DNA of 64,000 nucleotides from Bugula neritina (GCA_964035545.1 OZ037765.1:35240080-35304079), one strand, 5' to 3'; positions 774 through 47,716 are shown, counted from the first letter of the stretch. The notes: a model not told the origin generated them from the letters alone. A program made the numbers and translations.

Positions 774-1010
774 GTTCAACACAGAATCAGTGAGTACTGT
801 AAGAGAAAGAAGGACATTCTAACTGGACAGCTGGTAGTTGCTAGTGACACTCTCTCTCATGGAAGGAAACTCTACCTGTTTCCTGGATACAACGGAGTTT
901 CTGGTACAGATATCCATCAGGGAGCTACTCAGATAGAAGGAGAGAATAAACCAGAGTCAGTTGGCTCTACCATGTTATATAGAAAACGGAATTCATGTTC
1001 TATAATATAA
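774..1010 (+). CDS. Terminal coding exon of caspase gene A (end of p10 subunit plus short tail with polybasic/CaaX end); upstream exons lie outside the window
   Basis: tttcag acceptor at 768-773, then phase-0 frame VQHRISEYCKRKKDILTGQLVVASDTLSHGRKLYLFPGYNG...MLYRKRNSCSII*. The caspase C-terminal signature (S/D)TLxxKLYLFPG is present and the exon is homologous to 9100-9215. Confidence 0.85.
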   Translation, partial: VQHRISEYCKRKKDILTGQLVVASDTLSHGRKLYLFPGYNGVSGTDIHQGATQIEGENKPESVGSTMLYRKRNSCSII

Positions 1011-2294
1011 CAGTCTGTCTGATTTTCAGCTTTATTACCAACATTTAATCTACCACAAACAAGAAGATACATTCATGACATCATTTCCCTTTAGCTTTAG
1101 CAGCAAATGTATAGACAAAGAATTATATTCTATGCAAGTTTTTTTACATTGAATAACATCTTAATTATTATGTAATCATGTTGCTACTTTATCTATTTCA
1201 TTATTTTATATAGCCTCAACAACTACTCATAATACTTTGTATTTTGCATCTTAGAAGTTAATTAATGCATAATTGAGTTTTCCAGTTGTCTATTTGAACC
1301 TTTGATTTTGGTAAAAATGATACATTTTTCAACCGGAATTTCTAAATAAGTTAAACTTTGATCGTCTTCATGTAAAATAATGCTAATTAATTAAAGTTGA
1401 GGTTCTTTCATGAACACAACTTCTTTTGTTATAATTTTAATCTGGAACACAGGCTTTTCTCAGTTTATACTGCATCTACTTTTCTCTCTATAGCAGTAGA
1501 AGGTTGACTGTAGTATAGCGCTGCCTTTTCCCATTACAAAAGATAGTAAATTATTACCTAAACATTTTCAACTATACCATATAACATAACATAATATAAT
1601 AACAATCTGGGATTTTTATATACTCCAAGTTTTACTCTAGTTTAAAAATAAAGTACTAAGCTTATTCTAAAAGTGACAAAAATCTCTTATAATGTATTAA
1701 CCATGACTACTGTCTCAGCTAGAAACTGTAGCTTAATTCAAGCAAACATACTTCAAGTCTTGACTCAGAGAGCTAACACAGCTTTAAGGAAGCTGAATTA
1801 TGTGATATGCAACTCAAAGTGAAATAACTTCATGTGAATAGCTCAGCTACAGAGAGAGACATGGAAGCACAACTCTACCATGTGTACATTAGCAAACAAT
1901 AGGCCCTTTGCTAAGGGTTGGGCACAGATTTCTTAAAAATCTTGTACATATCAAAGGTTCTACTAAAACTAGTAAAGTCATGCAGCTAAAAGTCGTACGA
2001 ATTCAGAAGTATCAGAATATCAGAATTTTGCCAGTATATGTTTCCAGAGCTATTTCTGAGATAAAGAGAGTAGGTTTGAGGTCCCTGACGCCATTTTTTA
2101 TTTATCAGAAATGAACAATTCTTTGAGCATAACAAATACAGAAATGAGGTAAAAGTAAAAGATGAAAAATTTCACAGACAGCCTAGAAAGATAGACAATT
2201 TGATATTTATTCTTCTTATTCTCCATCCCATTTCATTTCAGATATTATAACAATAGAGGGCTTGAAACTGTGAAGAATTTGAAGGTTGACCTTA

Positions 2295-2517
2295 GTAATG
2301 CTGTGTAATGCTGTGTAATGCTGTGTAATGCTGTGTAATGCTGTGTAATGCTGTGTAATGCTGTGTAATGCTGTGTAATGCTGTGTAATGCTGTGTAATG
2401 CTGTGTAATGCTGTGTAATGCTGTGTAATGCTGTGTAATGCTGTGTAATGCTGTGTAATGCTGTGTAATGCTGTGTAATGCTGTGTAATGCTGTGTAATG
2501 CTGTGTAATGCTGTGTA
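2295..2517. repeat. (GTAATGCTGT)n 10-bp tandem repeat, ~22 perfect copies
   Basis: Direct reading. Confidence 0.97.
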
Positions 2518-2666
2518 AAATGTTGGAGTCCTGGCAGTGTCAGCTGTTTATTACTCACTTGAATGTATTATTGGAAATGTGAACCAATTCCTAAACAACA
2601 ACTACAAAGTTCTCTTTCTACCAGTTTATTATGAGATACATCTATCATGCATAATATTAATCATAT

Positions 2667-3214
2667 TGTAGTGAATTTTAGTAGTACAATTAGTTAGTAT
2701 ATTATATCGAAAGGGTTGACTCTATGCCGGACTGACACGCGAGGCCGGCAGCATCTTGTCGTCAGGATGGCACCACCAGTGACAGCCAATCAAGTGTGAC
2801 TGATAATTAACAATAGGCGGAGCTGTCAACGTGTTGCGAAAGCATGCTAGGCAGCTTGAGCCGCAGAGCAGATTGGGACTTGATCATGAACAGTTGTGTA
2901 TAAATTGCTCTATATTATGTAATCGTGTGCATTAGTGTTAGTAACTTTTATTGCTGTATAATTCGTAAAAAACAAACTCTATTCAATTGTGAGAAACCTG
3001 GTGAAGTGGCTTTGCATAAGTAGACCCTCTAATTATAGTGAATCGTAAATTCACTACAGTGGTGGCAGCAGTGGAATCTCGCTTATTGCAAATGCTCCTA
3101 GCCAGGGAGTAAAAAATGGCCAACGATGAGGACATACCCGTCAGGAACCGGTAGTGATGGAGGAGGATAACATAGGCGACCCAGCGCTGCCTATGGACAG
3201 GTACCATTTGCGGG
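2667..3214 (+). mobile_element. Gypsy LTR retrotransposon 5' fragment: LTR (2667-3058), tRNA-Leu-type PBS and start of gag
   Basis: TGTAG...CTACA termini, PBS tggtggcagcagtggaat at ~3060-3077, preceded by ATAT. Homologous to the reverse complement of 23420-23972. Confidence 0.8.
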
Positions 3215-4980
3215 CAAACATCAATAATATCATCATCCTAAAACTTAATGCTATTACATACAGTGATTAAAACTTTATTTTAAACTCATACTTCTAAAGT
3301 ACTTTGACGTTTACTACTTATGAATGTTTAGTACAGTATTTACTTGCTATAGTTGTATTCTTCCTAACAATAAAATACATGATGCACAAATGACTATAGC
3401 AATATTTCCTATCCAAGGCTGCATGCAGCAAAGAAGCAAGAATTTCTAGCTCACCTTAGTATCTATGCAATATTTGAGTTTGGATTACCATGCACTTCCA
3501 GCTCTAACATCTAGGTTGTTTCATTGTAATTTAAGCACTGTTTAAACTTTTCAAGAAAATGAGTTTTACCAACATTATAGGTGTTAGTATTCAGTAGTGT
3601 GGTTACTGTAGGGACAGCACTTAATGATCTGTATATTGCAACATAGCGTGTCATATTCATATCATCATCACATATCTGAGAAGTGTTTTTACTACAAAAT
3701 TTTTAACACACCCACATTTCTTTAGTAAATAATGTTTATTATATAGGTAAGCTTTAAATTATCATGTTCAGTTCCTCATAATATTTTACAACATTGAAAA
3801 TCTTTAACACTACAGTAGTTAGTGAATTGGGTTCTTCTCATACCATTGTTGCTTCAAAAATATCAAGGACTCGTATACCAAATAAATATGCAATGTTTTC
3901 TAATCTTTTCTATATTTTCCACAGTTTACTTATACTTAGCTAAAAAGATACACAATGTCTAAATAGTTGTAAAAAAATAAAAAGTTTGCCTTTTATTTGG
4001 CTCAACCAGGTCATAAATTTTGCAGTTAGATAATTTATCACAGCAATTATAAGGAGCCAATCAATTTTCTACTTTTCACCAACCGAAACAAAACTTCTGT
4101 CTAAGGCTTTTTAATCAAGAGGCTACCAAATACACTTATTAAAAATTTTATGTTTATCTTAATCCTTCAAAAGGATAGTCATAATCAAATTGAAAATCAG
4201 TCAACAAAAACCTAATGTAGGCACTGATGGGTCAATAATTTTCTATACCAGTTTCAAATTTGTTAGCTTAATTCTCAAGCAAAACAGTGTAGCACAATGC
4301 TTTTAAATTGTAATAGATCTCAGGCATGCACCTTTTAGTGGATGATTTCAAATTATCTGCTAAGCAAAGAAAATTGAACGAAAACCAGCAGAGCCAATTC
4401 ACAAACCAGTAACTAAATATGATCTAAAGGAATAAAAGTATATTTACCAAGGATGAAATATTAAATAATACAAAGTTGCAGAAAATCTATTATAAAAGAA
4501 TGAATTGACTAAGCTTCAACTTCATCCAGGTCATCGGCCTGTGAAGTCAAAACTTTGTATGCAGTAGCTTCTGGGTAACTTGAAGTCAATGTGTTTTTGT
4601 ATGACACCTTTTCTATTTCCTTGCAGTAATGAGATATAAACTATAATAACGTAACAACACTTACACTTTTTGCTGCAGGCTTTGTTTACTATGTAATATG
4701 ACAATACGCCTATCTTGCACAGTAATAACATAAATTACAAACCTTTATGCTATGTGCTGCTTTGCAGAGTAGCACAAGTTTTTAATACACCAGTAATATA
4801 TGGTTAAACATTTTAGTAAATAGGTGGTTTGACAAAACTATTAGCATAGTAATGCACATTCGAACAATTTATCTTGTATGTTTAGGGTGCAGAAGTTATC
4901 AAAGACCAGTGGGTCAAATTTTGCTCATTGGACATAATGTACCTTTTTATATACATTGCTTGAAATATAGTTTCTCATAG

Positions 4981-5640
4981 CTCGGAAAAGAACGGATTGA
5001 AATCTTTCTCTCAGAATTAACATTAGTAGCTCTAAAAAGTAGCTCAGACCTCATTTATTTCAACTGTAAGCAAGTGTACATATTAAATAACTTATAGCCC
5101 ATCAGTTTGTGTACCAAGTTTATGAATGTTATGTCCTTTTCCAAATAAAAAACTTCTTTATACTATAATAACAAAATAGAATGGATTGTGTGTTTTTCCA
5201 GCAGTTGCTTCATTAGTGGTACAATTACTTGTCCATGGTCTATTTTTAAACAAGCAATTTTTTAATTTTGCAACTATAAAACAATAAAGTTTGGAAATAT
5301 ATTAAAAAGATCAACTCAATGCTCTAAACTTATAATATGAAATTAAAAATGTACATGTTTTTTACAAATAACTTTTGGAAGCATGCATTTTGCACGTACA
5401 AATGTGCAGAATCTTATATAAGTTGAAAGGGCAAGATATTCCAGTGGGACAATCTTCTGATTGATTGAGTTTTACCTGGTCTATTGCAAGTATTATTGTA
5501 CTAGTTGTCTGTTTTCAACACAGAGTACATGACTGATGTTGTTATTTCAGGCACTCCTTTGACAAGCCCAGATGTTCAAAAACTTAAAACTGCCATTGCA
5601 GATCTAAAACAGAAGAAACAAAAGGAAAGCTCCAAAAATG
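4981..5640 (+). pseudogene. Putative upstream exons of caspase gene B (4981-5065; 5524 or 5551-5640) encoding a SAM-like helical segment
   Basis: AG/GT-bounded segments translate to LGKERIEIFLSELTLVALKSSSDLIYFN and (YMTDVVIS)GTPLTSPDVQKLKTAIADLKQKK. The SAM resemblance was judged by eye; use of the 5524 acceptor would create a TAG at the junction. Confidence 0.4.
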
Positions 5641-5898
5641 GTAGACTTCAGGCTTTTTAGAATAGCTAGTATATATCTCTCCTTTAGCATTTTGATGTAT
5701 AAGAAAATGAACATAATATGTCAAGTTTATTGCTCCGCCATAATAATTTTTTTTATGCAACAGTCAAAACTCGTACAAGATTGTCAATGCAAGAAATGTG
5801 ATAATGAGAATTACAGAAAGTACAAAATTCTGCATTTATATACCTACGCTATCAATATATTACATTACTGACAGAGTATGTTAATATTCACAATACAG

Positions 5899-6091
5899 AG
5901 ACTGTCAAATAACATCAGCAAACTGCCACCACCTCTTCTGTGGAAGATGAGTCGAGTGATCTCTCTGATGATGATGAATATATGGTACCTTCACCATCTG
6001 CTGTTGGCAGATTGAAACATCTCAAACAAGTTCCTGTTCCTACAACTAGACAAGATATAATAGACCTCTTTCCAAACACTAACAAGATGAT
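5899..6091 (+). pseudogene. Caspase gene B acidic linker exon (disabled)
   Basis: ETVK*HQQTATTSSVEDESSDLSDDDEYMVPSP...IIDLFPNT. In-frame TAA at 5910-5912, and the donor phase does not match the next exon (apparent frameshift). Confidence 0.55.
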
Positions 6092-6301
6092 GTAACAGTA
6101 TCTTATTATAGCAATTAATGATGTTTCTTACCAAGCTGACCTTTTAAAAGTATTTGGTGTAGACAGATTTTTCATTGCCTTGTGTTTTGACTTTTATATT
6201 AAATTTTGAGGCTTTTTCGTCTATGTTACTGTTCCTAAAAATTATGTCATGAGATTTATACAGTTAGAGGAATAATACTCTCAATAATTTGTTTCTACCA
6301 G

Positions 6302-6466
6302 GTGTTTCGTGTGACAAAGCCGAGGGGAACTGCTTTGATAATCAATAACAAGAAAATAAACAATCAAAAGGAAAGATTGGGTTCTGAAATAGATGTTGAA
6401 AATCTCACAGATATGCTCTAATTATTTCAGTTCAATGTCAAGTCAGAAAAAGATCTTACCGCTAAG
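6302..6466 (+). pseudogene. Caspase gene B exon: start of p20 subunit, with in-frame stop
   Basis: VFRVTKPRGTALIINNKKINNQKERLGSEIDVENLTDML*LFQFNVKSEKDLTAK. PRGxALIINN and RxGSxxD caspase motifs; TAA at 6419-6421; cag/gtaa boundaries, 165 bp, phase 0-0. Confidence 0.88.
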
Positions 6467-8039
6467 GTAACAGTACAATATATCTATTTCTTATATCTAA
6501 ACTTGTCTCACTGACAAACTTTTTACACAGCTGCAGCCTAGACTACATGCAAAACAGCTACTTGAAGACACATAGTTGCATTTGGTGCAGCCTGCAACCT
6601 GCACTGTGCACTGACTTGTCAAAACGCCTAGCTTGTGCAGTGAGTGACTTAAAACCAGGTTGGAACAGTTGCACAGCGACTGTTGAGTTTGGCAATACCA
6701 GCCATTGCACCAGCTCTGCAGCTAGTAGTTGAAGTGACTGTGCAGAGTAAAAAAATAAAAGAAGCAGGAAGGCAGCAATAGGATAACGTGGCACAAGGGC
6801 ACCAGATGTTTAGAACCAGTGGGCCATGTAATATTTGTTGTAAGCTAGCATCGCTGAGATAGAAACTGGGTGGCGTCACTGCGATATGTGCACACACCAG
6901 TGGTAGTACCTTATGGTATATGAAAAATTGTTGTTGATCATACGGCCTTAGTACTGGTGACGCTTTCACTGAGTTTCTGATTTATCATGCTGCCGTCAAC
7001 TGTTGTTATGATCATTATGGTGTTGACCAATAGCTGAAAATTCGGATCAAGTTCTATAGATGTGGCATGAAAAACAGCAACCACTATCAAAAAAGGCAGC
7101 AGGCGTGCAAAATAATTACTGCAGACAATGAGAGGTATAGTGACAAGCAGTATCAATGGAGCGCATTTTTTGTTGCTGCATTTAGAATAAGCACATTTCA
7201 ATACCTTTGATGACTGTCCACTTGAGGGTAAACCTGGTGCCAGCAATATATATCTACATACTTCCATTAAACATCAGAAGGAGAGAGTAGATGGCTCTAC
7301 TGATCGTACTTTCCCAACCGAGCCAGGAGCAGAAGGCATACCTAATTTGTATTTTTCCAAGTGAACGTCTCATCTCTGTGTGTTCACTTTTAAGGAAATT
7401 GTAACTGCTTAGAGAAAAAATAAGATTAGCTAGATATGATGAAACATGGGCTCTTGATGTTCAGAGAGCTAGGTAGATAATGATCAACAGGTACGGCCGT
7501 GGGTATTAGCACTCAGATAAGCAAGGCAGTCCACTGAACTTCAAACATGATAGGGATTGGAGATTGCATTTTTTATGTGCTTGAAGAATTTCTTGCATTA
7601 ACGAGTCATCAGTCTGCAAAAAATCCTTCTCTTTCAGTAGAGTGGTTTAAAAAGTTTAAAAAATGGCCATTACAGTGCGGCAACTGGAAAATGAACTTAA
7701 TTGCTTTTATGTTCAATTGCCATAATTATTGCTCGCATACAATTTTCATTAAAGCACAAAAGTATTTTTTATCAAATTTTGTTGGCTTGGAAAATTCAAT
7801 ATCTCCCAAACCTTTTTATTGTGGCTTCAGCAGATACATTCCATGTTTATAATATTCTGTATTGCGTTCTCCTAACTTGTTAACCGGTTTAGTCAAAAAT
7901 AAAAAGCATAAAACTGAACATTGCATTTATTATAGTGATAAACTTTAGTTAATATTTCTACGTGAAAGTCAGCATTCCTATAAGATCATCATTTTGCATT
8001 TACCTGTCAGAATGCTGTTTTTTCTTTTAAAACCAACAG

Positions 8040-8256
8040 GAAATATATGAAACAATTGAGAGAGAAGTAAATGATATTAGAAATGATCATGGAATGTTCT
8101 TCCTGTTTATTGGTTCCCATGGAGCTGAAGAATATGTCTGTGGATCAGATGGAGAGTTGGTAGAACTGGCAGGCGTCTATAACTTGCTGTCTGTTCCTCG
8201 AAAGAAAGAGATTCAGGATAAGCCTAAATTGGTCCTTATACAAGCGTGTAGCAATA
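8040..8256 (+). CDS. Caspase gene B catalytic exon (His-Cys dyad)
   Basis: EIYETIERE...MFFLFIGSHGAEEYVCGSDG...KPKLVLIQACSN. SHG and KPKxxxIQAC motifs; aacag acceptor and gtgagt donor. Confidence 0.92.
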
Positions 8257-8360
8257 GTGAGTGGCAACCTTAATATTTCTTTTATATTAACAAATGAAAA
8301 TAGAAATCATTTGATCTGAGCATTACAAGATAATAATAAAAATGCTATCTATTGATTTAG

Positions 8361-8480
8361 GGATACTTAAAGACAAAAAATATGCTGCACATAGAGTTTT
8401 ACGTGCTGATGTTGGTAACGGAGCTGAATTAGAGAAAAATCATGGTGAAAATTTGTATATTTTAAAAGCCAGCTTCCCGT
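8361..8480 (+). CDS. Caspase gene B exon: intersubunit linker and start of p10
   Basis: RILKDKKYAAHRVLRADVGNGAELEKNHGENLYILKASFP. Phase 1-1; tttag acceptor and gtaagg donor. Confidence 0.85.
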
Positions 8481-8646
8481 GTAAGGATACACCTAATTTT
8501 TTGAATTACAATGAAAATGTTCTGTGTGCATGGATATGTTTTTATGAAATATAAAAATAATGTTTCAGTGTATATATGTGATTATTAGCTTATATCTTTT
8601 AACATTAGCTTCCGGTCATAAGAGTTCAGCATTGTATGTTATCTAG

Positions 8647-8756
8647 CATATCCTTCTTTCAGATATCTTGGCCGTGGTTCTCTACTAGTCAGATGTTTTG
8701 TCAGAACCATGTACCGACATGCCTGTCACAGAGATATGCATGAGATCTACAAAGCT
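8647..8756 (+). CDS. Caspase gene B exon: p10 core
   Basis: SYPSFRYLGRGSLLVRCFVRTMYRHACHRDMHEIYKA, matching caspase G-Y-x-S-W-R-x4-GS. Phase 1-0; gtgagt donor. Confidence 0.88.
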
Positions 8757-9099
8757 GTGAGTTTGTTGAATTAATTATTAGGTCAACCCATTTAATGAAT
8801 ATACACTGTATAGTGTCTTTCAACAGTGATAATAATTTGTACCTCTCATGCACCTCCTTCGTTATAATAATCTGGGTGGCTGGTGATAAAATGAGTAGCA
8901 ATGACAACAAATTATAACCAGTTACAGCAAAAACTTGTACAGCTAGCAAACTTGTGTATTGGCTTGAGGCAAAACGTTAGTTTTTGCAAACTCAAAACTA
9001 CATTTGAATGCCAGATGAATAACCATGTTAACACGTTCATTTAAACATTTGGTAAAATTCACATTTCTTTGAAATCACATATGCATTATACTAATGTAG

Positions 9100-11049
9100 G
9101 TACAAGGCCGGATTAAAAAGTTCTGTGCAAAAACTAATCGCGATGTTGGGCAACTAGTACATGCTACAGACACCCTGACACACCATAGAAAGCTTTACCT
9201 GTTTCCAGGATATGATGGGGGTTCTGATAGAGAGGAGCTGAGTTTACTTCAACTCAGCAAGAGATTTCAATATCCTCCATCCAAACAACTTCTGTCAAGT
9301 TCAGCTGCACAGTCCACACTGTCAGAGACAGCCAGCACCTCACAGCAAGCAGAGACAGCCAGCACCTCACAGCAAGCAAAGACAGCCAGTACCTCACAGC
9401 AAGCAGAGACAGCCAGCACCTTACAGCAAGCAGAGACATCCAGTACCTCACAGCAAGCAGAGACAGCCAGAACCTTACAGCAAGCAGAGACAGCCAGCAC
9501 CTCACAGCAAGCAGAGACAGCCAGCACCTTACAGCAAGCAGAGACAGCCAGCACCTTACAGCAAGCAGAGAGAGCCAGTACCTCACAGCAAGCAGAGACA
9601 GCCAGCACCTCACAGCAAGCAGAGACAGCCAGCACCTTACAGCAAGCAGAGACAGCCAGCACCTCACAGCAAGCAGAGACAGCCAGCACCTCACAGCAAG
9701 TAGAGACAGCCAGTACCTCACAGCAAGCAGAGACAGCCAGAACCTTACAGCAAGCAGTGACAGCCATCACCTCACAGCAAGCAGAGACAGCCAGTACCTC
9801 ACAGCAAGCAGAGACATCCAGTACCTCACAGCAAGCAGAGACAGCCAGAACCTTACAGCAAGCAGAGACAGCCAGCACCTCACAGCAAGCAGAGACAGCC
9901 AGTACCTCACAGCAAGCAGAGACAGCCAGAACCTTACAGCAAGCAGAGACAGCCATCACCTCACAGCAAGCAGAGACAGCCAGTACCTCACAGCAAGTAG
10001 AGACAGCCAGAACCTTACAGCAAGCAGAGAGAGCCAGTACCTCACAGCAAGCAGAGACAGCCAGCACCTCACAGCAAGCAGAGACAGCCAGCACCTTACA
10101 GCAAGCAGAGACAGCCAGCACCTCACAGCAAGCAGAGACAGCCAGCACCTCACAGCAAGTAGAGACAGCCAGTACCTCACAGCAAGCAGAGACAGCCAGA
10201 ACCTTACAGCAAGCAGTGACAGCCATCACCTCACAGCAAGCAGAGACAGCCAGCACCTCACAGCAAGCAGAGACAGCCAGCACCTCACAGCAAGTAGAGA
10301 CAGCCAGTACCTCACAGCAAGCAGAGACAGCCAGAACCTTACAGCAAGCAGTGACAGCCATCACCTCACAGCAAGCAGAAACAGCCAGCACCTCACAGCA
10401 AGCAGAGACAGCCAGTACCTCACAGCAAGTAGAGACAGCCAGTACCTCACAGCAAGTAGAGACAGCCAGCACCTCACAGCAAGCAGAGACAGCCAGCACC
10501 TCACAGCAAGTAGAGACAGCCAGCACCTCACAGCAAGTAGAGACAGCCAGCACCTCACAGCAAGTAGAGACAGCCAGCACCTCACAGCAAGCAGAGACAG
10601 CCAGCACCTCACAGCAAGTAGAGACAGCCAGCACCTCACAGCAAGTAGAGACAGCCAGCACCTCACAGCAAGCAGAGACAGCCAGTACCTCACAGCAAGC
10701 AGAGACAGCCAGCACCTCACAGCAAGCAGAGACAGCCAGCACCTCACAGCAAGTAGAGACAGTCAGCACCTCACAGCAAGCAGAGACAGCCAGTACCTCA
10801 CAGCAAGTAGAGACAGCCAGCACCTCACAGCAAGCAGAGACAGTCAGCACCTCACAGCAAGCAGAGACAGCCAGCACCTCACAGCAAGTAGAGACAGCCA
10901 GCACCTCACAGCAAGCAGAGTCAGCCAGCACCTCACAGCAAGTAGAGACAGCCAGCACCTCACAGCAAGCAGAGACATCCATCACTTTCCAGCAAATAAA
11001 GATAAAACGCAAGCGCAAATCAAAAAGGAAGTTTTGTAAACAACAGTGA
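9100..11049 (+). CDS. Caspase gene B terminal exon (650 codons): end of p10, ~61x ETASTSQQA repeat, polybasic stretch and CKQQ*
   Basis: tgtag acceptor; VQGRIKKFCAKTNRDVGQLVHATDTLTHHRKLYLFPGYDGG reads without stop into the repeat and is in frame with ORF 9757-11049 (offset 657 bp). Confidence 0.85.
   Translation, partial: VQGRIKKFCAKTNRDVGQLVHATDTLTHHRKLYLFPGYDGGSDREELSLLQLSKRFQYPPSKQLLSSSAAQSTLSETASTSQQAETASTSQQAKTASTSQQAETASTLQQAETSSTSQQAETARTLQQAETASTSQQAETASTLQQAETASTLQQAERASTSQQAETASTSQQAETASTLQQAETASTSQQAETASTSQQVETASTSQQAETARTLQQAVTAITSQQAETASTSQQAETSSTSQQAETARTLQQAETASTSQQAETASTSQQAETARTLQQAETAITSQQAETASTSQQVETARTLQQAERASTSQQAETASTSQQAETASTLQQAETASTSQQAETASTSQQVETASTSQQAETARTLQQAVTAITSQQAETASTSQQAETASTSQQVETASTSQQAETARTLQQAVTAITSQQAETASTSQQAETASTSQQVETASTSQQVETASTSQQAETASTSQQVETASTSQQVETASTSQQVETASTSQQAETASTSQQVETASTSQQVETASTSQQAETASTSQQAETASTSQQAETASTSQQVETVSTSQQAETASTSQQVETASTSQQAETVSTSQQAETASTSQQVETASTSQQAESASTSQQVETASTSQQAETSITFQQIKIKRKRKSKRKFCKQQ
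9325..10985 (+). repeat. 27-bp coding minisatellite, ~61 copies
   Basis: Unit gagacagccagcacctcacagcaagca; variants differ by substitutions only, and the frame is preserved throughout. Confidence 0.97.
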
Positions 11050-12395: not shown

Positions 12396-13343
12396 CACAG
12401 AGTATATATACATGATAGATAACTCCTGTGTAATGGCCTACAGAGTATATATACATGGTAGATAACTCCTATGTAATACAGAGTAAATATACATGGTAGA
12501 TAACTCCTGTGTAATACAGAGTAAATATACATGATAGATAACTCCTATGTAATACAGAGTAAATATACATGGTAGATAACTCCTGTGTAATACAGAGTAA
12601 ATATACATGGTAGATAACTCCTATGTAATACAGAGTAAATATACATGATAGATAACTTCTATGTAATACAGAGTAAATATACATGATAGATAACTTCTAT
12701 GTAATACAGAGTAAATATACATGATAGATAACTCCTATGTAATACAGAGTAAATATACATGGTAGATAACTCCTATGTAATACAGAGTAAATATACATGG
12801 TAGATAACTCCTATGTAATACAGAGTATATATACATGGTAGATAACTCCTATGTAATACAGAGTAAATATACATGGTAGATAACTCCTATGTAATACAGA
12901 GTAAATATACATGGTAGATAACTCCCATATGTAATACAGAGTAAATATACATGGTAGCTAACTCCCATATGTAATACAGAGTAAATATACATGGTAGATA
13001 ACTCCCATATGTAATACAGAGTATATATACATGGTAGATAACTCCTATGTAATACAGAGTATATATACATGATAGATAACTTCTATGTAATACAGAGTAA
13101 ATATACATGATAGATAACTTCTATGTAATACAGAGTAAATATACATGGTAGCTAACTCCCATATGTAATACAGAGTAAATATACATGGTAGATAACTCCC
13201 ATATGTAATACAGAGTAAATATACATGGTAGATAACTCCCATATGTAATACAGAGTATATATACATGGTAGATAACTCCCATATGTAATACAGAGTAAAT
13301 ATACATGGTAGCTAACTCCCATATGTAATACAGAGTAAATATA
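12396..13343. repeat. 38/40-bp minisatellite (~24 copies)
   Basis: Unit gtaatacagagtaaatatacatggtagataactcc(ca)tat. Confidence 0.95.
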
Positions 13344-13829
13344 CTATTATATAGTCATTATGTAGTCATGTATATAACTATATACTAACTAATACTATAA
13401 CTATATAGGCCTACTAACCTGTAACATATGGTGGATAGTACATGTATATAACTGTGCACTGTACATGCACTGTGCTACCAGTAATACCAACATGAAAGAT
13501 CATGTTGGCACAAACTCAAATATTTATAAACAATCTGTCATGTTGATAGAATTCCCTTGCAAGCTACAGGACAGTATAGCGCACTATGTAAATATCCTGT
13601 AGCCTGTCACTATGTGCAGTATAGCTAGCAGTATTCTCATTATATCATATCTATATTCAGTCATCTCAACTGCACTCTCTTCCATAACTTATACCTTCTG
13701 CTACGAAATACACCTTATAATACTGAAAGAGATTGGTAATCATTCTTACTTCCTATGTAGATTTAGAGTTACAATTTTCTTATTGATTGAGTTACAAACA
13801 TATTAAGAGACATAATTGGTAACTATCTA

Positions 13830-14728: not shown

Positions 14729-15726
14729 GTAGACACACAGACAGACTACTTACTGTAGACACACAGACAGACTACTTACTGTAGACACACAGACAGACTA
14801 CTTTTACTGTAGACACACAGACAGACTACTTACTGTAGACACACAGACAGACAACTTACTGTAGACACACAGACAGACTACTTACTGTAGACACACAGAC
14901 AGACTACATACTGTAGACACACAGACAGACTACTTACTGTAGACACACAGACGGACTACTTTTACTGTAGACACACAGACAGACTACTTACTGTAGACAT
15001 ACAGACAGACAACTTACTGTAGACACACAGACAGAATACTTATTGTAGACACACAGACAGACTACTTAGTCTAGGGCCACACTGTGCGTATTTTCGCATG
15101 CGAAAGTTGAAACCACAAGTAGCAAAGGTGTCCACTGTAGCGTCAGTGATGCGGGATAAATAAAGTTTTCATTTTTAAATCGCACTCGCTTTCAATAAAA
15201 CACAATTTACTGGAATGTAGCACTAAAATAAAGGAATCGGGCTCGCTGAATAACTACCAGCCAATTAGGTGACGGAGACAGAGACGATTCGCACTTCGTT
15301 CAGAATGCTGAGCGACAAGTGCGAATGTTTTCTCAACACATACAGTGGACACCTTTGCTACTTGTGGTTTAAATGTTCGCATGCGAAAATACGCACAGTG
15401 TGACCTTAGGCTTACTGTAGACACACAGACAGACTAATTATACTGTAGACACACAGACAGACTACTTACTGTAGACACACAGACAGACTACTCAATGTAG
15501 ACACACAGACAGACTACTTACTGTAGACACACAGGCAGACTTCTTACTGTAGACACACAGACAGACTACTCACTGTAGACACACAGACAGACTACTTCCT
15601 GTAGACACACAGACAGACTACTTACTGTAGACACACAGACAGACTACTTACTGTAGACACACAGACAGACTACTTACTGTAGACACACAGACAGGCTACT
15701 TACTGTAGACACACAGACAGACTATT
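14729..15726. repeat. 26-bp minisatellite interrupted by a MITE
   Basis: Unit gtagacacacagacagactacttact on both sides of 15069-15411. Confidence 0.95.
15069..15411. mobile_element. Non-autonomous DNA transposon (MITE), PIF/Harbinger-like
   Basis: ~70-bp TIRs (gtctagggccacactgtgcgtattttcgcatgcgaa... / ...ttcgcatgcgaaaatacgcacagtgtgaccttaggc) and a TTA target-site duplication (15066-15068, 15412-15414). Confidence 0.85.
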
Positions 15727-15873
15727 TATAGTGCATGTGTATATACTGCTATTGTCAGCTCAACACACACATCAGAGTCACAGAGTGAAACTGGATATAA
15801 ATAAGATGTTTTGCTCAGTTATTCAGAGTTCATTTATTTTTTATTAATTTTTGTGAATATCATATAATTATAG

Positions 15874-16102
15874 GGGAATACAGAGTCTGGTTCAGACACT
15901 CCGGAGAGGATCCACCTGATGACAAATGGTATCGAAGTGACACAAGAAAACAGACCATAGAGGGTATAAAGGAAAAGGTTAAAGGTCACACAATCACCCA
16001 CATGATAGTAGATGGAAATCTACCAGATAATATTCATCTACTGGCTCCAGAGTTGAGTCACCTGATCGTGAAGAATGTGAAATCTGTCTCTAACCTGTCT
16101 GT
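15874..16102 (+). CDS. LRR gene exon 2 (N-terminal cap and degenerate first LRRs)
   Basis: GEYRVWFRHSGEDPPDDKWYRSDTRKQTIEGIKEKVKGHTITHMIVDGNLPDNIHLLAPELSHLIVKNVKSVSNLSV. tatag acceptor and gtaagt donor; phase 1 in, phase 2 out, matching the LRR exons. Confidence 0.72.
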
Positions 16103-17788
16103 GTAAGTCTCAGATTATTATTATGGTGTTTAGGTAAAATAAAATAAGAATATTTTCAGTGGAGGTGCCCACGTGCACAAATAGGCAGGTGGAGCACATC
16201 AATACCAACATTTTCACCACCAAGCCAACATTCTTTGTTTTGTATCTAGAGTTCTCAATAAAAGAGGTAAATTTGCAGGGGTCAGGCAATTTTCAAGGAG
16301 ATATGATGGAATTTTAGATATGTAATTATTTGAGTGATTTAAGTTTTTTATTTAAATTTTTTTCATACAAATCCTGACTAAAGATTGACATGTGGACAGA
16401 GCCTATGACACAATGTGTTGCTGTTTTTCTGGAAATTCCTGATGTTCTCTGAGCTGACACTTTTGTTCCAGCATCTAGATTAATAAACTTTAGGATGTTA
16501 TGAGCACTCCATAGTGTCCTCTTAACTCCAGTTCATTCTGACAAATACTACTTCTTCTATCTCTCTAGAAATTAAAATTTTTGTTATATGTAGACACTCT
16601 ATAGTGTTTCCTTAACCCCACCAATTTCTATTCCAGTTTGACAAATGGAACTTTTTCTGCAGCTCTGAAAATTAAAGATTTCAAAATCAGAGTTAGCCCC
16701 CCATTTTCACCCAATATTATTGTGTTTTATCAATTGGGTTAATATTATTCTGGTGTAAACTAACCTTTAGATAGGAATGATGAGCTGATTAAAATTAATA
16801 TACAGAGAGTGGTTATTGGCTGATGAGTTATGTCTTTAGATTTTTCTGTATCATGGTCAAAATAAGAAGAGGTCCTTTTGTTACACTAAATACTTATCGA
16901 ATTATCTACCGACTATAGATAAACAAAAAGTTGAATATGTAATACATGTTGGCGCAGTGGTTTTGTAATGTATAACATGTTACATACAGTGTATAGTTTC
17001 TTAGAATAAAGAGTTGTATATGAAATAGACTAATATGTTGCTAGCTATTTCTTAGGACAATATAAAAACATATTTTGTTCTTATGTCTAAATACATTTCC
17101 GACTTTTCTAGCCAACAGAAAGTTAATTCATTACATTATTAGAAACATATTTCCAAAGAGTAATGTAGCTCAAAGTAACGGCTATTACTGTTAGAGTTAA
17201 AATTTGACAGAGCTCTTTATTGCACTGAATATTACAAGCAAGGGAATGAAGAACAACAAAAAAAAAAAGAAAAGTATAAAGTAAATAGCTATAAACTTGC
17301 TATTACAGAAAAGCAGCTAAGTACAATAGGCATAAGCTAAGAAACAAAAGCACATTGAAATAACATCAACCGATTCAATGTGTGGCTATAAACATATTGT
17401 AGTGAATTTCGCAATTCACTATATTATGTGGGTCGACTTATACAAAGCTACTACACCAGGTTATTTACGTTATTACAAGTTTATTATTTACAAGATACAA
17501 GAATTGAATTACTACTAACATGAATTGAACGATTACATAATAAGTGAGCCTTTACACACAACTACTCTAAGCGAAGCCCCAAGCTGCTCTGCCCGGCTAG
17601 CTACTTAGCGTGCTTCCACTACGAGTAGTTAGCTCCACCTGCTATCAATTAACACTCAGTCCTGATTGGCTGGTATTAGTGGTGCCACTGTCGACCATAA
17701 GATACAAGTCGCAGGAGGTCGATGTAATCGATCTCCACAATAGCATACAATATAGAGTTGACCCTTTCAATATAATACTAATAATAAA

Positions 17789-18213
17789 TTGGGTCATTTT
17801 ACTTAATTTAGTACACACTGGATATCTTCAGTTTTTGGCTATTTTTCACAATTTAGCTGGTAATGAACATGGTTTTTTGGCCGAAACTAGTGAAACACCA
17901 ACAAATACACCTAAATAATCAAAGTTCTTTTTAATTTTGCTTCATTCCCTATGTTTTTTCCTAATTATTCAGCTAGTTTTGGTTACGGACCGTTACGTTT
18001 TTTTCGTAACGGTCGCACATATAGAATATTAAGTGCATATGACAATGACCAGTGCTTTAATGTTGGGGAATCCCCTCCCAGCCTTTTCTGTTATGCGTAG
18101 TTAAAACCAGCACATAAAAAGACCATGTATAGTAAATTTCAATTAATTTTGAGCAAACTTTAGTATTAGGTCATAAGTTGCTGGTGTGTACTAAATGAAG
18201 TAAACTGAATCAA
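17789..18213. mobile_element. MITE family X, copy 1, inserted in the Gypsy 3' LTR
   Basis: Absent from the other LTR; imperfect ~28-bp TIRs ttgggtcattttacttaatttagtacac / gtgtactaaatgaagtaaactgaatcaa. Confidence 0.8.
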
Positions 18214-19464
18214 TTGCACCACTGAAATCCATTACACTCGCCACACCAATCGAAAGGTACACTCTATGATTAATTCTTGTATGACAACATTATAAAAATT
18301 AAAAATATTGAAAAGTAGACAAGAATAAAAGAACACAAAATAACATCAGGATAACATAATCAAGTGATTTACATAACATTAACAAAACGATCGATTAATG
18401 GCCCGTCGCAGGGTCGAAGTGTCTCTCACCCGATAACGTAAGGCAGCATAAAGGGGATGGGGAAGGACTGTATCACACTCACATAGTTCGAACCAAGCAA
18501 TGGGTGGCGTCGAGAAGCCACCAGAAGAATCAAGCGTGGCAAAGGAATCTCCCCAAGGGGGGGGGAGAAAAAGAAGGGGGGGTTGACTGGTCTCTTTCTA
18601 GAGGGTCGTGTCGAACACCAACATCCACACTGATCACCGTCGAATTCCCAAAGGGGAGAATTTAAAGTTTCTTTATCTTGGCTTTCACCTTTAATTATTA
18701 ACTTTCATGCAGGATTCTTTTAATATTACTTATTACATTTATTACTTCTTATTATTACGATTTGCTCCCTCCTTGCAGTATTATTACGTCGTCGCTATGA
18801 CGAAAAGAGAGAAGAACTCCTCTGTCTAGTTGCATCTCTGCACCTCCCTGTTGTAGGGCACCATCCGCCACAACAGTCAACAGAACTGCTATTATGGCGC
18901 TACAGGAATCAAGTCAAGCAGTCAACATCGCAGTCGACAAATTAATGTAATGAGTGATGGGTAACTGCGGGACGGTGGTGCCAGGAGAAAGAACATGCCA
19001 TTAAAGTATCACCTGCAACAGAATGCCAGAAACTGTTGAAGGGGTTTTCACCTGGTCAGTACGACACCTCGACTGAGTCTCGCAATCTACTAACCACTGA
19101 TTATTACTAAATCATGCGGTCGATTGCCCCACTCAAGTCGTCAGTGAAATCACCTGACTTGGGAAACCAGCTTTATCAGTATGATAAAGCGAGACTGATT
19201 TAAAGCTACCAGCTTGAATTCTACTTAAATAATAGAATTATACTAGTAGACTTACCATAGGACAGCCACGACGTTAGTCTGCTGCCCACTTAGGCCTCGT
19301 AGTACGCCAGCCTGCCGGGTACGTGCGTGCACGTTGGCAGTTGAAATAGAAAAGAACGCTCTTCGCAGTGAAAGTGATTACATAATACCCCCTTCACTAG
19401 CGAGCTGGCTTTGCTCTTTTCTTTACCCCCGGTGGTGTTACATTTACACTACTGGGTAGGCAAC

Positions 19465-22400
19465 TCACAGTTGCGTCTCCTTGTATTTCGGAAACGCAAC
19501 TCTCAATTGCTCGTCGCCCCAGATTTCTTTTATGATAGCTGATGGATGTTTTTCCACTGCATCACACAATAAATCTTTTAAATAAGATGGAGGCGCCCTA
19601 GTGCGTTGCCTACGCTCCAACTGCACTGGGGAATTTGCTACGACTGGTGACTCTTTCACCACTGGTGGTGTCGCCAGTACGGGGGGTCCACCAGTACAGG
19701 TGGTCCTCCCCAGCTGCCTCTTCCTCATGATTTTGAGGAATTTCCATCTCATCCGGGGTGATGGGCCTGTCGACCGGCTCCACAGGTGGTGGAGCTGGCT
19801 CGGACAGGTCTTCTGGTGTGTTGGCCTCCTCCTCCTGGGGTGGAGGTGGCCGGGGCAGGTCGGGCGGCGCGTCGGCCGGCGCGTCAGTCGGCGCGTTGGC
19901 CGCCCTGTCCTGATCTTGCAGTATCTCCTCTATCTCTCTATACGCCATGCCTCGCCCCCTCATAGGAGGGCGTCTAGCGGGCTCTAAGAGAGGAGGTGCT
20001 TAACCTGTTGCATCAGGACTCGCCCAGTGAGGTTTCAGCCGTGCTTCGTTCTGGACCGACACTTGTCCAGACCGTTCCACTTTATAAGTGTGATTAGGCA
20101 TCACCTCAATCACGCAGTAGGAACTTACGAACTTCGGCTGCAACTTGGCTGCCTGTCCGCGTCGCCGGCAATGACTGGTCATCCAGACCCAGTCTCCCAC
20201 CTTGTATAGGGGGGGGTCGTCAGAGTCACCACTTCTGACCTGCCATTGCTGCTCACGTAGCACCTCGTGAGCCGTCCCCATGCGCTTTATGAGCTTGTCC
20301 ACGTAATCGTGGACGTTGCTCTCCGGAGCTGGAACATGATAGGTTACGTGCTCAGGAACCCTGGTTTCTCTCCCCAGCATGAGAAAATTAGGGGTCTCCA
20401 GTGTACTGGAGTGAGGGGTACTACGGTAAGCTCGCATGATTTGCGGCAGCACCATGTCCCACTCTTCCTGGCTCCTACCGATAAGCAGGCTTCTCAGTGA
20501 GTCTCTTAGCATTCGGTTGTTCCGCTCCACAACCCCGTTCCCTTGCGGGTGATACGGGGTCGTCCGACTCTGGTTTACCCCCCACATTTTACAGAGATCG
20601 CTCATAAGTTACGACTGAAACTGGGCGCCTTGATCAGAGTGTATCTGTTCCGGCAAGCCGAAATAGCAGAACACATGCTGATCCAAAGCTCTGGCCACCG
20701 AGGGGGCCGACGCATCTGGAATAGCCAGTGCATCAGCCCACCGCGTGAAATGGTCAGCTAGTACCAGTATCCAGTTATTACCTCTCACTGTTGTGGGCAT
20801 GGGGCCTACCAGATCTACAGCAACTATTTGCCACGGACGACCGGCATGGAGGCGGCGCCTCCCTGCGGTCTCAGTGGGGCCGCCGCGCTTACTAGCTTGG
20901 CACACCTCGCACTTCCGCACCCGGAGTCGGACATCCCGGGTCATACCGGGCCAAAACCACTGAAGTTGAAGACACCTAGTCACCCGGCTAGCTCCCGCCT
21001 GAGCTTGCTTATGGGTGTCCCAGATCAACTTCCGCCTCAGAGCGGACGGGCAGACTACCTTCTCTTGTTCACTGCGATTGGTGCCGGCTGCCAACGTTAT
21101 CGTTAGCAGCCCATCGCTGTTAAACCGGAGAGAGCCCCAGCGGTCACAGAAGTACTCAAACTCTGCACTTTTTACTCGCTGTTCGGCCTTACTCGGCCGC
21201 CGTTCCTCCTTCTTGGCCCGGACTAGGTCAGCTACCACCCCTGGTAGTGTAGCCTGGAGCCGACACAGCTCTCTGACGTTCCTGAGCAGCGTGGGGTTTG
21301 CGTGAAGGTTGTTAACAGCTTCATTAGGGGATTCAAAGTTGTCCTTCTTCCTAGCTGTATACACCCGCTTTCCCCAACTGTGCTTCAACGTCCGAGCGAG
21401 GGGGTCCACCATCCTTGCGCTCAATACTCTGGCACTGCTTACACCCATCTGCCTGGCGGCCGCTGAGTTCGTCGGCGTCACCGTGTTTCTTACCGGGTTG
21501 ATGTTCGATCCGATAAGAAAACTCTGCCAGGATTTCCAGCCAGCGCACTACTTGGCTTGATGGTTCCGCCCGTCGACACAGCCATATCAAAGACGCATGA
21601 TCCGTCCGAAGCCGGAATGTGCGCCTATATAGGTATGGTCTAAAGTGTTTGACCGCCTTGACTACTGCCAAGAGTTCCCTCCTGGTTGTACAGTAGTTCT
21701 TCTCAGGCGCCGACAGGGCTTTGCTATAGTAAGCCACCGCCACCTCGCGGCCATCTTGGACATGCGACAGCACAGCCCCCACATTATGGTTACTGGCATC
21801 AGTATCCAAAATGTACTCCTTCGCAGGGTCAGGATACCCCAAGATGGGTGCTTCCACCAGGCGATCCTTTACGTGGTCAAATGCCTTCTGCTTGGCCTGT
21901 GTCCACTGCCATCGCACCCCTTTTGCTGTCAGCCGATTTAACGGCTGTGCAATTCCGGCGAAGCCTGGTATGTACTGACGATAGTACCCTACCAGTCCCA
22001 GGAATGCCCGCAATTCAGGGAGGTCGACAGGGACAGCCCAGTCCCTCACAGCCCGTACCTTCTCGGGGTCGGTGGCGACCCCGTCTCGACCAACTACATG
22101 GCCCAGGTACTTAACCTCGCGATGCAATAATGCACACTTAGAGGGCTTGAGCTTCAGACCAGCAGCTCGAAGTCCGTCAAACACCTCCCTGAGTCGACTG
22201 ACATGTGTGTCGAAGTCGGGGGAGATGACAATGACATCATCGAGGTAGATGAGCAAGGTCTTCCAGTGTAGCCCACTCAGGACCTGCTCCATGAGTCGCT
22301 GGAAGGTGGCCGGTGCGGGCGTAAGTCCGAATGGCAACACCTTCCATTTCCAGAGCCCATCCCGCGTAATAAACGCGGCCTTGTCCTGTGCTTCAGGAAT

Positions 22401-29024: not shown

Positions 29025-29165
29025 AATGGCTAATCTGAAGAATCTGGAGACTCTTAATATATCATGGAATAACTTCAGTGAAGGATTACCTGATGTATTC
29101 ACATCAATGACATATCTAAGAGAGTTGGGTATTAGTGGCTGTAAACTACCAACTCTACCTGAGAG
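29025..29165 (+). CDS. LRR exon A (141 bp, 2 LRRs)
   Basis: tactatag acceptor and gttagt donor, phase 2-2; MANLKNLETLNISWNNFSEGLPDVFTSMTYLRELGISGCKLPTLPE. Confidence 0.9.
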
Positions 29166-39721: not shown

Positions 39722-39779
39722 GTATATAGAAACAACATGGATTAGTGAAAGGTGTGTAGAGTTGAGTAGTGTAGAGCTT

Positions 39780-40532: not shown

Positions 40533-40673
40533 CATGTCTAACCTGGAGAATCTGGAAACTCTTAATATATCAGGGAATAACTTCAGTGAAGGATTACCTG
40601 ATGTATTCACATCAATGACATCTCTAAGAGAGTTGCTTATGTATAACTGTGAACTACCAACTCTACCTGAGAG
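40533..40673 (+). CDS. LRR exon B
   Basis: 141 bp, phase 2-2; MSNLENLETLNISGNNFSEGLPDVFTSMTSLRELLMYNCELPTLPE. Confidence 0.9.
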
Positions 40674-41823: not shown

Positions 41824-41964
41824 CATGTCTAATCTGAAGAATCTGGAGACTCTTAATATGTTAGGGAATAACTTCAGTGAAGGATTACCTGATGTAGTCA
41901 CATCAATGACATCTCTAAGGAAGTTGTATATTAGTGGCTGTAGACTACCAACTCTACCTGAAAG
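41824..41964 (+). CDS. LRR exon C
   Basis: 141 bp, phase 2-2; ...LNMLGNNFSEGLPDVVTSMTSLRKLYISGCRLPTLPE. Confidence 0.9.
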
Positions 41965-42836: not shown

Positions 42837-42977
42837 CATGTCTAATCTGAAGAATCTGGAGACTCTTAATATGCCATGGAATAACTTCAGTAAAGGATTA
42901 CCTGATGTAGTCACATCAATGACATCTCTAAGACAGTTGGATATTAGTCACTGTAACCTACCAACTCTACCTGAGAG
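42837..42977 (+). CDS. LRR exon D
   Basis: 141 bp, phase 2-2; ...LNMPWNNFSKGLPDVVTSMTSLRQLDISHCNLPTLPE. Confidence 0.9.
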
Positions 42978-44697: not shown

Positions 44698-44838
44698 CAT
44701 GTCTAATCTGAAGAATCTGGAGACTCTTGATGTGTCAGAGAATAACTTCAATGAAGGATTACCTGATTTAGTCACATCAATGACATCTCTAAGGAAGTTG
44801 AATATAAAGAGATGTGAACTACCAACTCTACCTGAGAG
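44698..44838 (+). CDS. LRR exon E
   Basis: 141 bp, phase 2-2; ...LDVSENNFNEGLPDLVTSMTSLRKLNIKRCELPTLPE. Confidence 0.9.
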
Positions 44839-45709: not shown

Positions 45710-45850
45710 CATGTCTAATCTGAAGAATCTGGAGACTCTTAATATGTCAAGGAATAACTTCAGTAAAGGATTACCTGATGTATTCACATCAATGACATTT
45801 CTAAGACAGTTGGATATTAGTCACTGTAACCTACCAACTCTACCTGAGAG
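45710..45850 (+). CDS. LRR exon F
   Basis: 141 bp, phase 2-2; ...LNMSRNNFSKGLPDVFTSMTFLRQLDISHCNLPTLPE. Confidence 0.9.
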
Positions 45851-46321
45851 GTTAGTAAATGCAAGCACCCTCCTAGTGTTTTGCTTCCATGTTTATAGAC
45901 ATGCATCTCCTGTTGCTATGTATTGTTTAAATTATTGCAAATTTCTCATTCTATATTTAAAGTTAACCAAAAATCTAGAATTTACCTGTATGTTTTGTGA
46001 CTTACATTTTTTTTGCTAACTCATCTGTGGAAATTTCCTAAATCTGTGGAATGTTTGCTTATATGATGTATACAATATGCAAATAAATATAAGCTAATAA
46101 AGAGATGCTACGTAATATTATGACATGTGGTTATATGGAATATATAAGACATGTTCCAATACTCTAATTTTCTATAATGTTTGAATTAAGTAAAAGTTAT
46201 AGTAAGCTGAGTTTATTAGCCTTTTCTTGAAAAAAAATAAATTAAGCTTAAACTTTACTACATGTCACTTGCAGACTAAAACAAGGTGCTGATCTAGCCA
46301 TATAATACAAAAGTAATATAA

Positions 46322-47474
46322 GGGTCATTCCATGTCAACTCAACAAAGTTTTTGAAGATTTTCACTGACCCGTTTCAGATTTTTTTGAGACCCTAGTATG
46401 GTATTTCAAAATATGTCAATTGAAAAAATCTCAAATATTAGCCCATAATTCCTAATAGTTTCATAGTTATGGCACTTTTTGTGAGCAAAGGTTGGTAAAA
46501 AATCAGTCCTTTTTTCATGGGTTTCAGTACCGAAGGTCAACTTCATAGATTTATATCTCAGAGACGATTCAATACAAACCTTTCATACATTTATGGATGA
46601 TAGTTCTACATGATTTTATTCAACTAAAAGCAAAAGACTTGCCATGAATGTTGATCAGAAAAACTCTCTGTTGTATTACGTTTTCAGGTCAAAAACTTGG
46701 TAGTTTTTCAAAATCGTCAATTTTTAGGCGCCTAAAATTCACCTTTTGCAAATAGCTATGAACTTCATATTTTTAGCACCTAATAAATATATTATATAAA
46801 TCATTTTAGAAAAGATTCAGTTTTTTACTGGCATAAGTGTGTTGAAATATTAAAATCTGAAAATTATGCATTTTTTCATGCATGAGCTCATGCATGAAAA
46901 AATGCATAATTTTCTAGGAGAAAACTAAATGTGGGTATAAATGAACTTTTTTAAAAATGGTTTCATTTCAGGTGATTGTGATGAATCTTATCCCAGTAAA
47001 AAGCTGAGACTTTTCTAATGTGATATATATATATAACAAAGTATGTAGGTGCTAAAAATATCAAGATCATAGCTATTTGTAAAAGGTGAGTTTTAAGTGC
47101 CGGAGAATTGACGATTTTGAAAAATTACCAAATTTTTGGCCTAAAAACGCAATGCAACAGAATATTTTTCTCAACACTTATGGCAGATTTTTTGCTTTTA
47201 GTTGAATAAAATCATGTAGAACTATCATCCATAAATGTATGAAAGGTTTGTATTGAATCGTCTCCGAGATATAAATCTATGAAGTTGACCTTCCGTACCG
47301 AAACCCATGAAAGAAGGACTGATTTTTTTACAAACCTTTGCTCACAAAAAGTGCCATAACTACAAAACTACCAGGAATTAAGAGCTAATATTTATTATTT
47401 TTTCATTTGACATGTTCTAGAATACTCTACTAAAATTTTGGTTTTGGCCTTGTTGAGTTGGCGTGGAATGACCC
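46322..47474. mobile_element. Palindromic foldback element, copy 2 (co-duplicated with the LRR unit)
   Basis: Same termini and identical flanking junctions as 43447-44598. Confidence 0.88.
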
Positions 47475-47575
47475 ATACATCAATAAGAAACTTTATGCTA
47501 GAATTACATTTCCTTTTACTCTGATGCATGGTTGTATTACTACATGATGTCTCAACTAGTATATGTTTACTATAG

Positions 47576-47716
47576 CATGTCTAATCTGAAGAATCTGGAG
47601 ACTCTTGATGTGTCAGAGAATAACTTCAGTAAAGGATTACCTGATGTATTCACATCAATGACATCTCTAAGAAAGTTGGATATTAGTCACTGTAACCTAC
47701 CAACTCTACCTGAGAG
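47576..47716 (+). CDS. LRR exon G
   Basis: 141 bp, phase 2-2; ...LDVSENNFSKGLPDVFTSMTSLRKLDISHCNLPTLPE. Confidence 0.9.

Follow-up and report, generated by a model that had tools for sequence, protein, structure and literature searches.

Two caspase genes and the start of a gene with variable leucine-rich repeats (LRRs), consecutive on the same strand of a bryozoan genome, raise the question of whether they are sensor and effector genes that happen to be clustered, or pieces of tandem copies of one long gene. The stretch concerned, hereafter the window, comprises 64,000 nucleotides (nt; G000:C1:35240080-35304079) and lies ~340 kb from the end of the 35.6-Mb contig C1 of a 216-Mb genome; 50 kb of flanking sequence was added on each side, so that 164 kb was examined, and coordinates are given relative to the window throughout (negative values, upstream; values above 64000, downstream). 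An earlier note on the window alone had described the end of caspase A, caspase B and the start of the LRR gene as neighbours, and we located all three in that order, head to tail on the plus strand (caspase A last exon, 771-1007; caspase B, 5551-11046; LRR gene from 15874 onward). We estimate a probability of about 0.8 that the window holds the tail of one LRR-Roc-COR-caspase gene (gene A) and the head of a second one in tandem with it (gene C/D, whose caspase module is D), with a dead caspase module, caspase B, in between. New in this reading are the assignment of the 5′ half of gene C/D to the window, the recognition that caspase B is dead and the finding that a C-terminal CaaX motif is not general in the family.

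Homology, Pfam and folding searches, made exon by exon, put the number of N-terminal exons in the 164 kb at exactly two (-30147 and 15874) and that of Roc-COR exons likewise at two (-4357..-2459; 94300-96276), against three caspase modules (A, B and D). The flanks supplied what the window lacked, namely the 5′ parts of gene A upstream and the 3′ parts of gene C/D downstream. Beginning 30 kb upstream, gene A runs through an N-terminal exon, nine LRR cassettes, a Roc-COR exon, a linker exon and six caspase exons to its end at 1007, its last exon being homologous to those of caspases B and D and of ~40 paralogues. Gene C/D has its N-terminal exon and seven cassettes inside the window (Table 1), very probably followed downstream by six more cassettes at 81.8-93.1 kb, the Roc-COR exon at 94300-96276 and a caspase ending at ~99.2 kb; the LRR gene indeed has no terminal exon in the window. 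Cassettes 2-7 share the acceptor ...tttactatAG and the donor AG/GTTAGT, with phase 2 at both ends. The N-terminal exon ends on two codon bases, the cassettes start with one and end with two, and the Roc-COR exon starts with one, so that the exons are splicing-compatible throughout. The two genes are also collinear outside their exons: the 5′ region of gene A aligns with 15634-17185 and then with 28156-28902, and the region from its last cassette to its Roc-COR exon aligns with 93115-94346. Because collinearity resumes on either side, the intervening segment 17186-28155 is a nested insertion of long terminal repeat (LTR) retrotransposons.

The critical point is the gap between the cassettes of the window and those beyond it. 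The sequence after cassette 47576-47716 and the sequence before cassette 81807-81947 are two pieces, of 1028 and 702 nt, that together rebuild one whole 1725-nt reference intron (45851-47575) at ~99.5% identity, and the intron after 47576-47716 is therefore an entire cassette intron into which 32.4 kb have been inserted. The insertion junctions carry an imperfect short duplication, no terminal repeats were found, and fragments of a reverse transcriptase (RT) lie at 49300-50520 on the minus strand. Were the LRR gene to end somewhere between 47.8 and 81.8 kb, with a separate Roc-COR-caspase gene of undetected 5′ end behind it, sensor and protease would be different polypeptides; LRR-only genes are common in animals. 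Such an arrangement is nevertheless very unlikely, given that the insertion has one half of a single intron on either side and that the gap is free of N-terminal exons, cassettes, Roc-COR exons and homologues of the gene A flanks, with no terminal exon seen either, Pfam searches of its open reading frames (ORFs) returning RT fragments only. The family as a whole speaks in the same direction. Each of the 107 homologues of the N-terminal exon found genome-wide lies upstream of a Roc-COR exon on the same strand, and the two kinds of exon, the latter numbering at least 67, pair one to one. In the A/D subfamily, which has six N-terminal and six Roc-COR exons, the distance between the two is 19-78 kb (40 kb and 66 kb in two other members), and long genes are thus normal in this subfamily. 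Exon 15874, the 13 cassettes, the Roc-COR exon at 94.3 kb and the caspase at ~99.2 kb very probably represent one gene by descent, judging from their sequences, and probably also one gene in function. This gene spans ~83 kb, having been stretched by retrotransposons and by the 32.4-kb insertion in a single cassette intron.

The middle of the architecture, which the earlier note had left as a question mark, turned out to be Roc-COR. In the exon of the downstream gene, Roc (PF08477) scores 29.3 bits against a Pfam cut-off of 27, both A and D carry the GxxxxGKT P-loop and the D-x-G-G-Q motif expected of Roc, and the family profile matches the Roc domains of LRRK1, LRRK2 and the Roco protein of C. 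tepidum. An AlphaFold model of the 659-aa Roc-COR exon (predicted local distance difference test, pLDDT, 87.8; predicted template modelling score, pTM, 0.87) matches LRRK1 with an E value of 2.6e-21 over ~650-700 columns and, likewise along its full length, LRRK2 and the C. tepidum LRR-Roc-COR protein; it also matches the isolated COR domain 3dpt with a target TM score of 0.63. Its fold matches are confined to Roco proteins and small GTPases, and the model would place COR directly after Roc. No NACHT or NB-ARC domain was detected by Pfam in the Roc-COR exon or in full-length relatives. The caspase part is recognizable as well: genes A and D have both SHG and QACSG, every caspase exon is open, and the predicted proteins thus retain the SHG and QACxG motifs in an intact frame; PF00656 scores 126-172 bits in relatives. 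Between COR and caspase lies an acidic, Ser-rich linker, in which Pfam revealed no death-fold domain. The SAM-like segment proposed for this position finds no support: even when E values up to 1 were allowed, Pfam detected no SAM family in the caspase B linker exons or in the COR-caspase linkers of two full-length relatives.

The LRR cassettes are hypervariable in a patterned way. Across the 22 cassettes of genes A and C/D, variation falls at codons 9, 12, 15, 34, 36, 38, 39 and 41, which are the x positions of LxxLxLxxN. The cassettes around the insertion are recent duplicates whose exons differ at 11 of 282 nt, with all ten changed codons nonsynonymous, whereas the introns of the same units differ at only nine of ~1722 nt (Fisher p = 1.8e-5 versus exons). 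Either diversifying selection or exon-targeted conversion would be compatible with this contrast.

Several points weigh against reading gene C/D as an intact single gene of this kind. Neither gene A nor gene C/D yielded a start codon or a first coding exon: between 11047 and 15873 there is no ATG-bearing exon with a consensus donor in the right phase, and the ATG just 5′ of the acceptor of the gene C/D N-terminal exon reads GTG in gene A. A truncated cassette at 93437 is off the splice phase and would have to be skipped, as it probably is. The Pfam score of COR-A in gene C/D is 20.3 against a cut-off of 35.3, and COR is therefore identified by its fold match and by relatives. None of the sequencing runs found is recorded as RNA, and the runs X3 and X4, of unrecorded type, were compared with caspase B alone, so that a transcript across the 34-kb intron is putative. 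As to the 32.4-kb insertion, it may be an artefact of the assembly, or it may have put the gene out of action. Finally, ligand sensing, GTP gating and proximity activation are functions that we infer. A rival reading along these lines is that gene C/D, although one gene by descent, has been silenced or splice-broken by its four insertions (11 kb, ~11 kb, 32.4 kb and ~7 kb), its LRR array being a fossil, in keeping with the pseudo-cassette at 93437 and the fruitless search for a start codon. We regard this as unlikely, though distinctly less so than the division into two genes. The N-terminal exon, all 13 cassettes, the Roc-COR exon and the caspase exons are open, with their splice sites kept, whereas the neighbouring pseudogene B has both stops and a frameshift; the cassettes flanking the insertion have changed nonsynonymously only, and at binding-face codons; and the two subfamily members mentioned above have 40 kb and 66 kb between N-terminal and Roc-COR exons.

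Caspase B has a different history from the two tandem LRR-Roc-COR-caspase genes around it. Its homology with the full-length paralogues L042 and L043 (contig C8) begins at 5480-5499, inside the 75-90-nt intron that follows the Roc-COR exon in these paralogues, which bears out the remark that it has no convincing first exon. The module has no N-terminal exon, LRR, Roc or COR, and its closest relatives are on another chromosome rather than being its neighbours A or D. Two in-frame stops, which had gone unremarked, interrupt the linker exon and the first caspase exon. Both are retained in a DNA contig from run X1, which otherwise departs from the assembly at 29 sites over 4651-6874, and they are thus not assembly errors. 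A scan of the window for QACxG gave no match, since caspase B reads QACSN where A and D have QACSG, and its exons were found by Pfam and homology. Consequently, caspase B has no intact frame with the catalytic His and Cys. On the strength of its sequence, it is a dead partial copy, truncated at the 5′ end, that derives from the linker and caspase part of a gene of a related type. The earlier proposal of tandem copies of one architecture accordingly holds for gene A and the LRR gene, with their two N-terminal and two Roc-COR exons and their collinearity, and fails for caspase B, which does not form the end of another complete copy. As regards the X1 contig itself, its 29 base differences are accompanied by four indels over 2.2 kb (~1.3%), its depth is ~2x that of neighbouring contigs, and it looks like a divergent allele or another individual.

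The opposite case for caspase B would be that it works as a caspase on its own, tethered to the membrane through a long Ser/Thr/Gln spacer and a polybasic CaaX terminus. It could appeal to SHG and a catalytic Cys, to an in-frame ATG at 5529 ahead of the first homologous exon and to a last exon that is open for 649 codons and ends in KRKSKRKFCKQQ. Each of these has a counterpart that brings the proposal close to refutation. Besides the two stops and the QACSN motif, the ATG at 5529 is intronic sequence in the full-length paralogues. The long last exon is mostly a minisatellite whose 27-nt unit, present as a single copy in the paralogues, is free of stops in three of six frames, so that its openness is no evidence of coding. 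The ancestral tail lies 3′ of the repeat in a different frame, which makes KRKSKRKFCKQQ, and hence the polybasic CKQQ end, a frameshift product. The reads, which were compared with the caspase B region 3330-9322 only, add a slight hint that caspase B is silent: in X3 and X4 only a conserved piece of 40-70 nt of one exon is covered, the contigs continue into unlike sequence and must therefore stem from paralogues, and exons specific to caspase B have zero coverage. No annotated product matched the unique start of its last exon, a result of little weight because only proteins of 357-1135 aa were covered. Caspase B is not alone in its fate. A second solo caspase module, L041 (G000:C8:4895000-4904999, at ~6700-8550), lies ~13 kb downstream of another full-length gene and is 92.7% identical to the 3′ part of the full-length L043; it breaks off within the intron that precedes the first caspase exon, and no stop was seen in the exons checked. 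The existence of this second copy with another breakpoint implies that truncated modules recur, apparently as by-products of duplication.

The CaaX end that the earlier note assigned to the whole architecture did not survive a wider comparison. Among 29 paralogue C-termini that we read, CSII is found only in A and in one 89%-identical paralogue; the other 27 have no Cys at the fourth-from-last position, most of the family ends shortly after ...LYLFPGFNG with a few charged residues, and gene C/D ends in ...TKVKQ, without a cysteine. Gene A and its CSII-bearing paralogue may be membrane-anchored; as far as the predicted C-termini go, neither CaaX nor membrane anchoring is a property of the family.

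Table 1. Exons and other features of genes A and C/D, caspase B and the inserted elements, in window coordinates
Feature	Position	Strand	Remark
Gene A N-terminal exon	-30147..-29887	+	homology
Gene A LRR cassettes (n = 9)	-18337..-12963	+	141-nt exons
Gene A Roc-COR exon, 1.9 kb	-4357..-2459	+	homology
Gene A catalytic caspase exon	-1141..-911	+	SHG/QACSG; just upstream of window
Gene A terminal exon	~771-1007	+	end of caspase small subunit and tail ...NSCSII-stop
Caspase B exon	5551-5640	+	homology
Caspase B linker exon	5899-6089	+	homology; bears first stop
First in-frame stop, TAA	5910-5912	+	paralogues TCA or TCT (Ser) here
Caspase B first caspase exon	6299-6472	+	homology; bears second stop
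Second in-frame stop, TAA	6419-6421	+	GAA in A, D, L044; CGA in L042, L043; CAA in L041
Caspase B catalytic exon	~8037-8250	+	SHG, QACSN; Pfam Peptidase_C14 35.3 bits
Caspase B exon	8420-8485	+	homology
Caspase B exon	~8634-8759	+	homology
Caspase B last exon, 649 codons open	9100-11046	+	ends KRKSKRKFCKQQ-stop
Caspase B minisatellite, 27 nt x 61.6	9323-10985	+	ETASTSQQA units; Tandem Repeats Finder
Gene C/D N-terminal exon	15874-16099	+	80-84% identical to that of gene A; contains no start codon
Nested LTR retrotransposons (copia-type, gypsy-type)	17186-28155	-	Pfam gag, integrase, RT, RNase H
Gypsy-type element	RT/RNase H 21351-23054; integrase 20000-21481	-	long open frames
Copia-type element	gag 27263-27877; integrase 25773-27335; RT 24012-25757	-	long open frames
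LRR cassette exon 1	29025-29165	+	141 nt, two LRRs; homology
LRR cassette exon 2	40533-40673	+	141 nt
LRR cassette exon 3	41824-41964	+	141 nt
LRR cassette exon 4	42837-42977	+	141 nt
LRR cassette exon 5	44698-44838	+	141 nt
LRR cassette exon 6	45710-45850	+	141 nt
LRR cassette exon 7	47576-47716	+	141 nt
Left part of split cassette intron, 1028 nt	47717-48744	+	~99-99.5% versus intron 45851-47575
32.4-kb insertion	48745-81104	.	first 15 kb in window (48745-64000)
Right part of split cassette intron, 702 nt	81105-81806	+	directly 5′ of cassette 81807-81947

The remainder of the sequence is dominated by repeats. The window is AT-rich, its GC-rich islands being retrotransposons, which fill 17.2-28.2 kb and much of 29.5-40.4 kb; Pfam searches of ORFs in the GC-rich block at 32.5-38 kb returned RT fragments only. 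A gypsy element related to the one in the window is present on the plus strand at 83.6-90.3 kb, and within the 32.4-kb insertion, 1.7 kb at 71339-72994, in a region of 15% GC, is its own reverse complement at 85.5% identity. Tandem arrays include a minisatellite of 36 nt x 15.7 inside the last intron of gene A (199-762), a perfect array of 10 nt x 22.4 at 2295-2518 that recurs near 100300, and a minisatellite of 38 nt x 24.4 at 12397-13344, in the stretch that separates caspase B from the LRR gene. Directly 5′ of the gene C/D N-terminal exon, a 26-nt tandem repeat (GTAGACACACAGACAGACTACTTACT) occupies 14729-15068 and 15411-15728; it is also present 5′ of the N-terminal exon of gene A (L001, near 9690-9790), and could be promoter-associated or a shared mobile fragment.

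The tandem LRR-Roc-COR-caspase genes of the window belong to a large family. Dozens of its Roc-COR, N-terminal and caspase exons crowd the last 3 Mb of C1 (32.5-35.5 Mb), and further clusters reside on C6, C5, C7 and C8. The closest named protein relatives come from the cheilostome bryozoans Watersipora subatra and Bugula neritina and bear the NCBI name ‘MFHAS1 homolog’. In W. subatra, LRR, Roc/COR and Peptidase_C14 are combined in two RefSeq proteins (1419 and 1413 aa), and the B. neritina protein EB796_002463, which matches the examined genome at only 85-90%, has Roc, COR-A and caspase. The single-chain architecture considered in the earlier note is thus borne out by these protein models, whereas its membrane tether, with CSII in two of 29 C-termini, is not. 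Outside bryozoans, the same domain order is found in the amphioxus Branchiostoma floridae (XP_002614028.1: LRR, Roc, COR-A, COR-B and Peptidase_C14, all above Pfam cut-offs), and Branchiostoma belcheri XP_019643705.1 has LRR-Roc-COR-A-COR-B with a CARD at the end, in the position of the caspase, as if Roco proteins were linked to caspases in two ways, through fusion and through recruitment, with the same output logic. Both amphioxus proteins are database models and share ~28% identity in Roc-COR, and no papers describing amphioxus LRR-Roc-COR-caspase or -CARD proteins were found. Likewise, searches combining Roco or Roc-COR with caspase, and Bugula with caspase, recovered no published description of an animal Roc-COR-caspase fusion, the nearest literature concerning prokaryotic conflict systems and LRRK2.

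The architecture suggests how such a protein would work. The hypervariable concave face of the LRRs would bind a ligand; binding would be coupled, as in other Roco proteins, to the GTPase cycle of Roc and to dimerization through COR; and two caspase domains brought together in this way would be activated by proximity, so that one chain would act as sensor, switch and protease, serving immunity or cell death. In this respect, it would resemble the NLRP1 and NLRC4 inflammasomes and the apoptosome-type STAND sensors, in which an LRR sensor and an NTPase acting as switch or oligomerizer lead to caspase activation by proximity. The likeness to an inflammasome, already proposed from the window, accordingly extends to the logic of sensor, NTPase and caspase and stops at the NTPase itself, which is Ras-like Roc with COR rather than the NACHT or NB-ARC of NLR and STAND proteins; furthermore, the bryozoan caspase is covalently fused instead of being recruited through CARD or PYD, and no death-fold domain was found. 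With MFHAS1/MASL1 and the C. tepidum Roco protein, the bryozoan family shares LRRs that lead straight into Roc and then COR, without a kinase. It differs from them in the complete caspase that is fused behind COR via the acidic linker and in building its LRRs from 141-nt exons that are interchangeable and hypervariable. MFHAS1 is a single-copy gene in vertebrates, whereas the bryozoan family has >60-100 members in one genome. The lamprey variable lymphocyte receptors (VLRs) provide yet another parallel, in that the bryozoan family, too, has short LRR modules with variation at the concave face, and exons that diverge faster than their introns; unlike in the VLRs, the cassettes are ordinary germline exons, with no evidence of somatic assembly.

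For genome annotation, the locus carries two lessons: genes of this kind can exceed 80 kb through insertions, so that their halves may be mistaken for an ‘LRR gene’ and a ‘caspase gene’, and stand-alone caspases beside them may be dead fragments rather than membrane-anchored effectors. More broadly, and as a tentative proposal that we hold with considerably less confidence than the reading of the locus, bryozoans, and perhaps amphioxus, might possess a large family of germline-encoded one-chain receptors, in which a cassette-built, positively selected LRR would act through Roc-COR to dimerize and fire the fused caspase, providing an inflammasome-like innate immunity independent of NLRs, with modules such as B and L041 as by-products of birth and death. 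Most work on Roco GTPases has concerned LRRK2 and Parkinson's disease, and it is unclear which signals these GTPases naturally receive and pass on. If the proposal is true, the position of Roc-COR between a fast-evolving LRR and a caspase would give this switch an obvious input and a measurable output, and the family would represent a second route, besides that of the NLRs, by which recognition is linked to an animal death protease.

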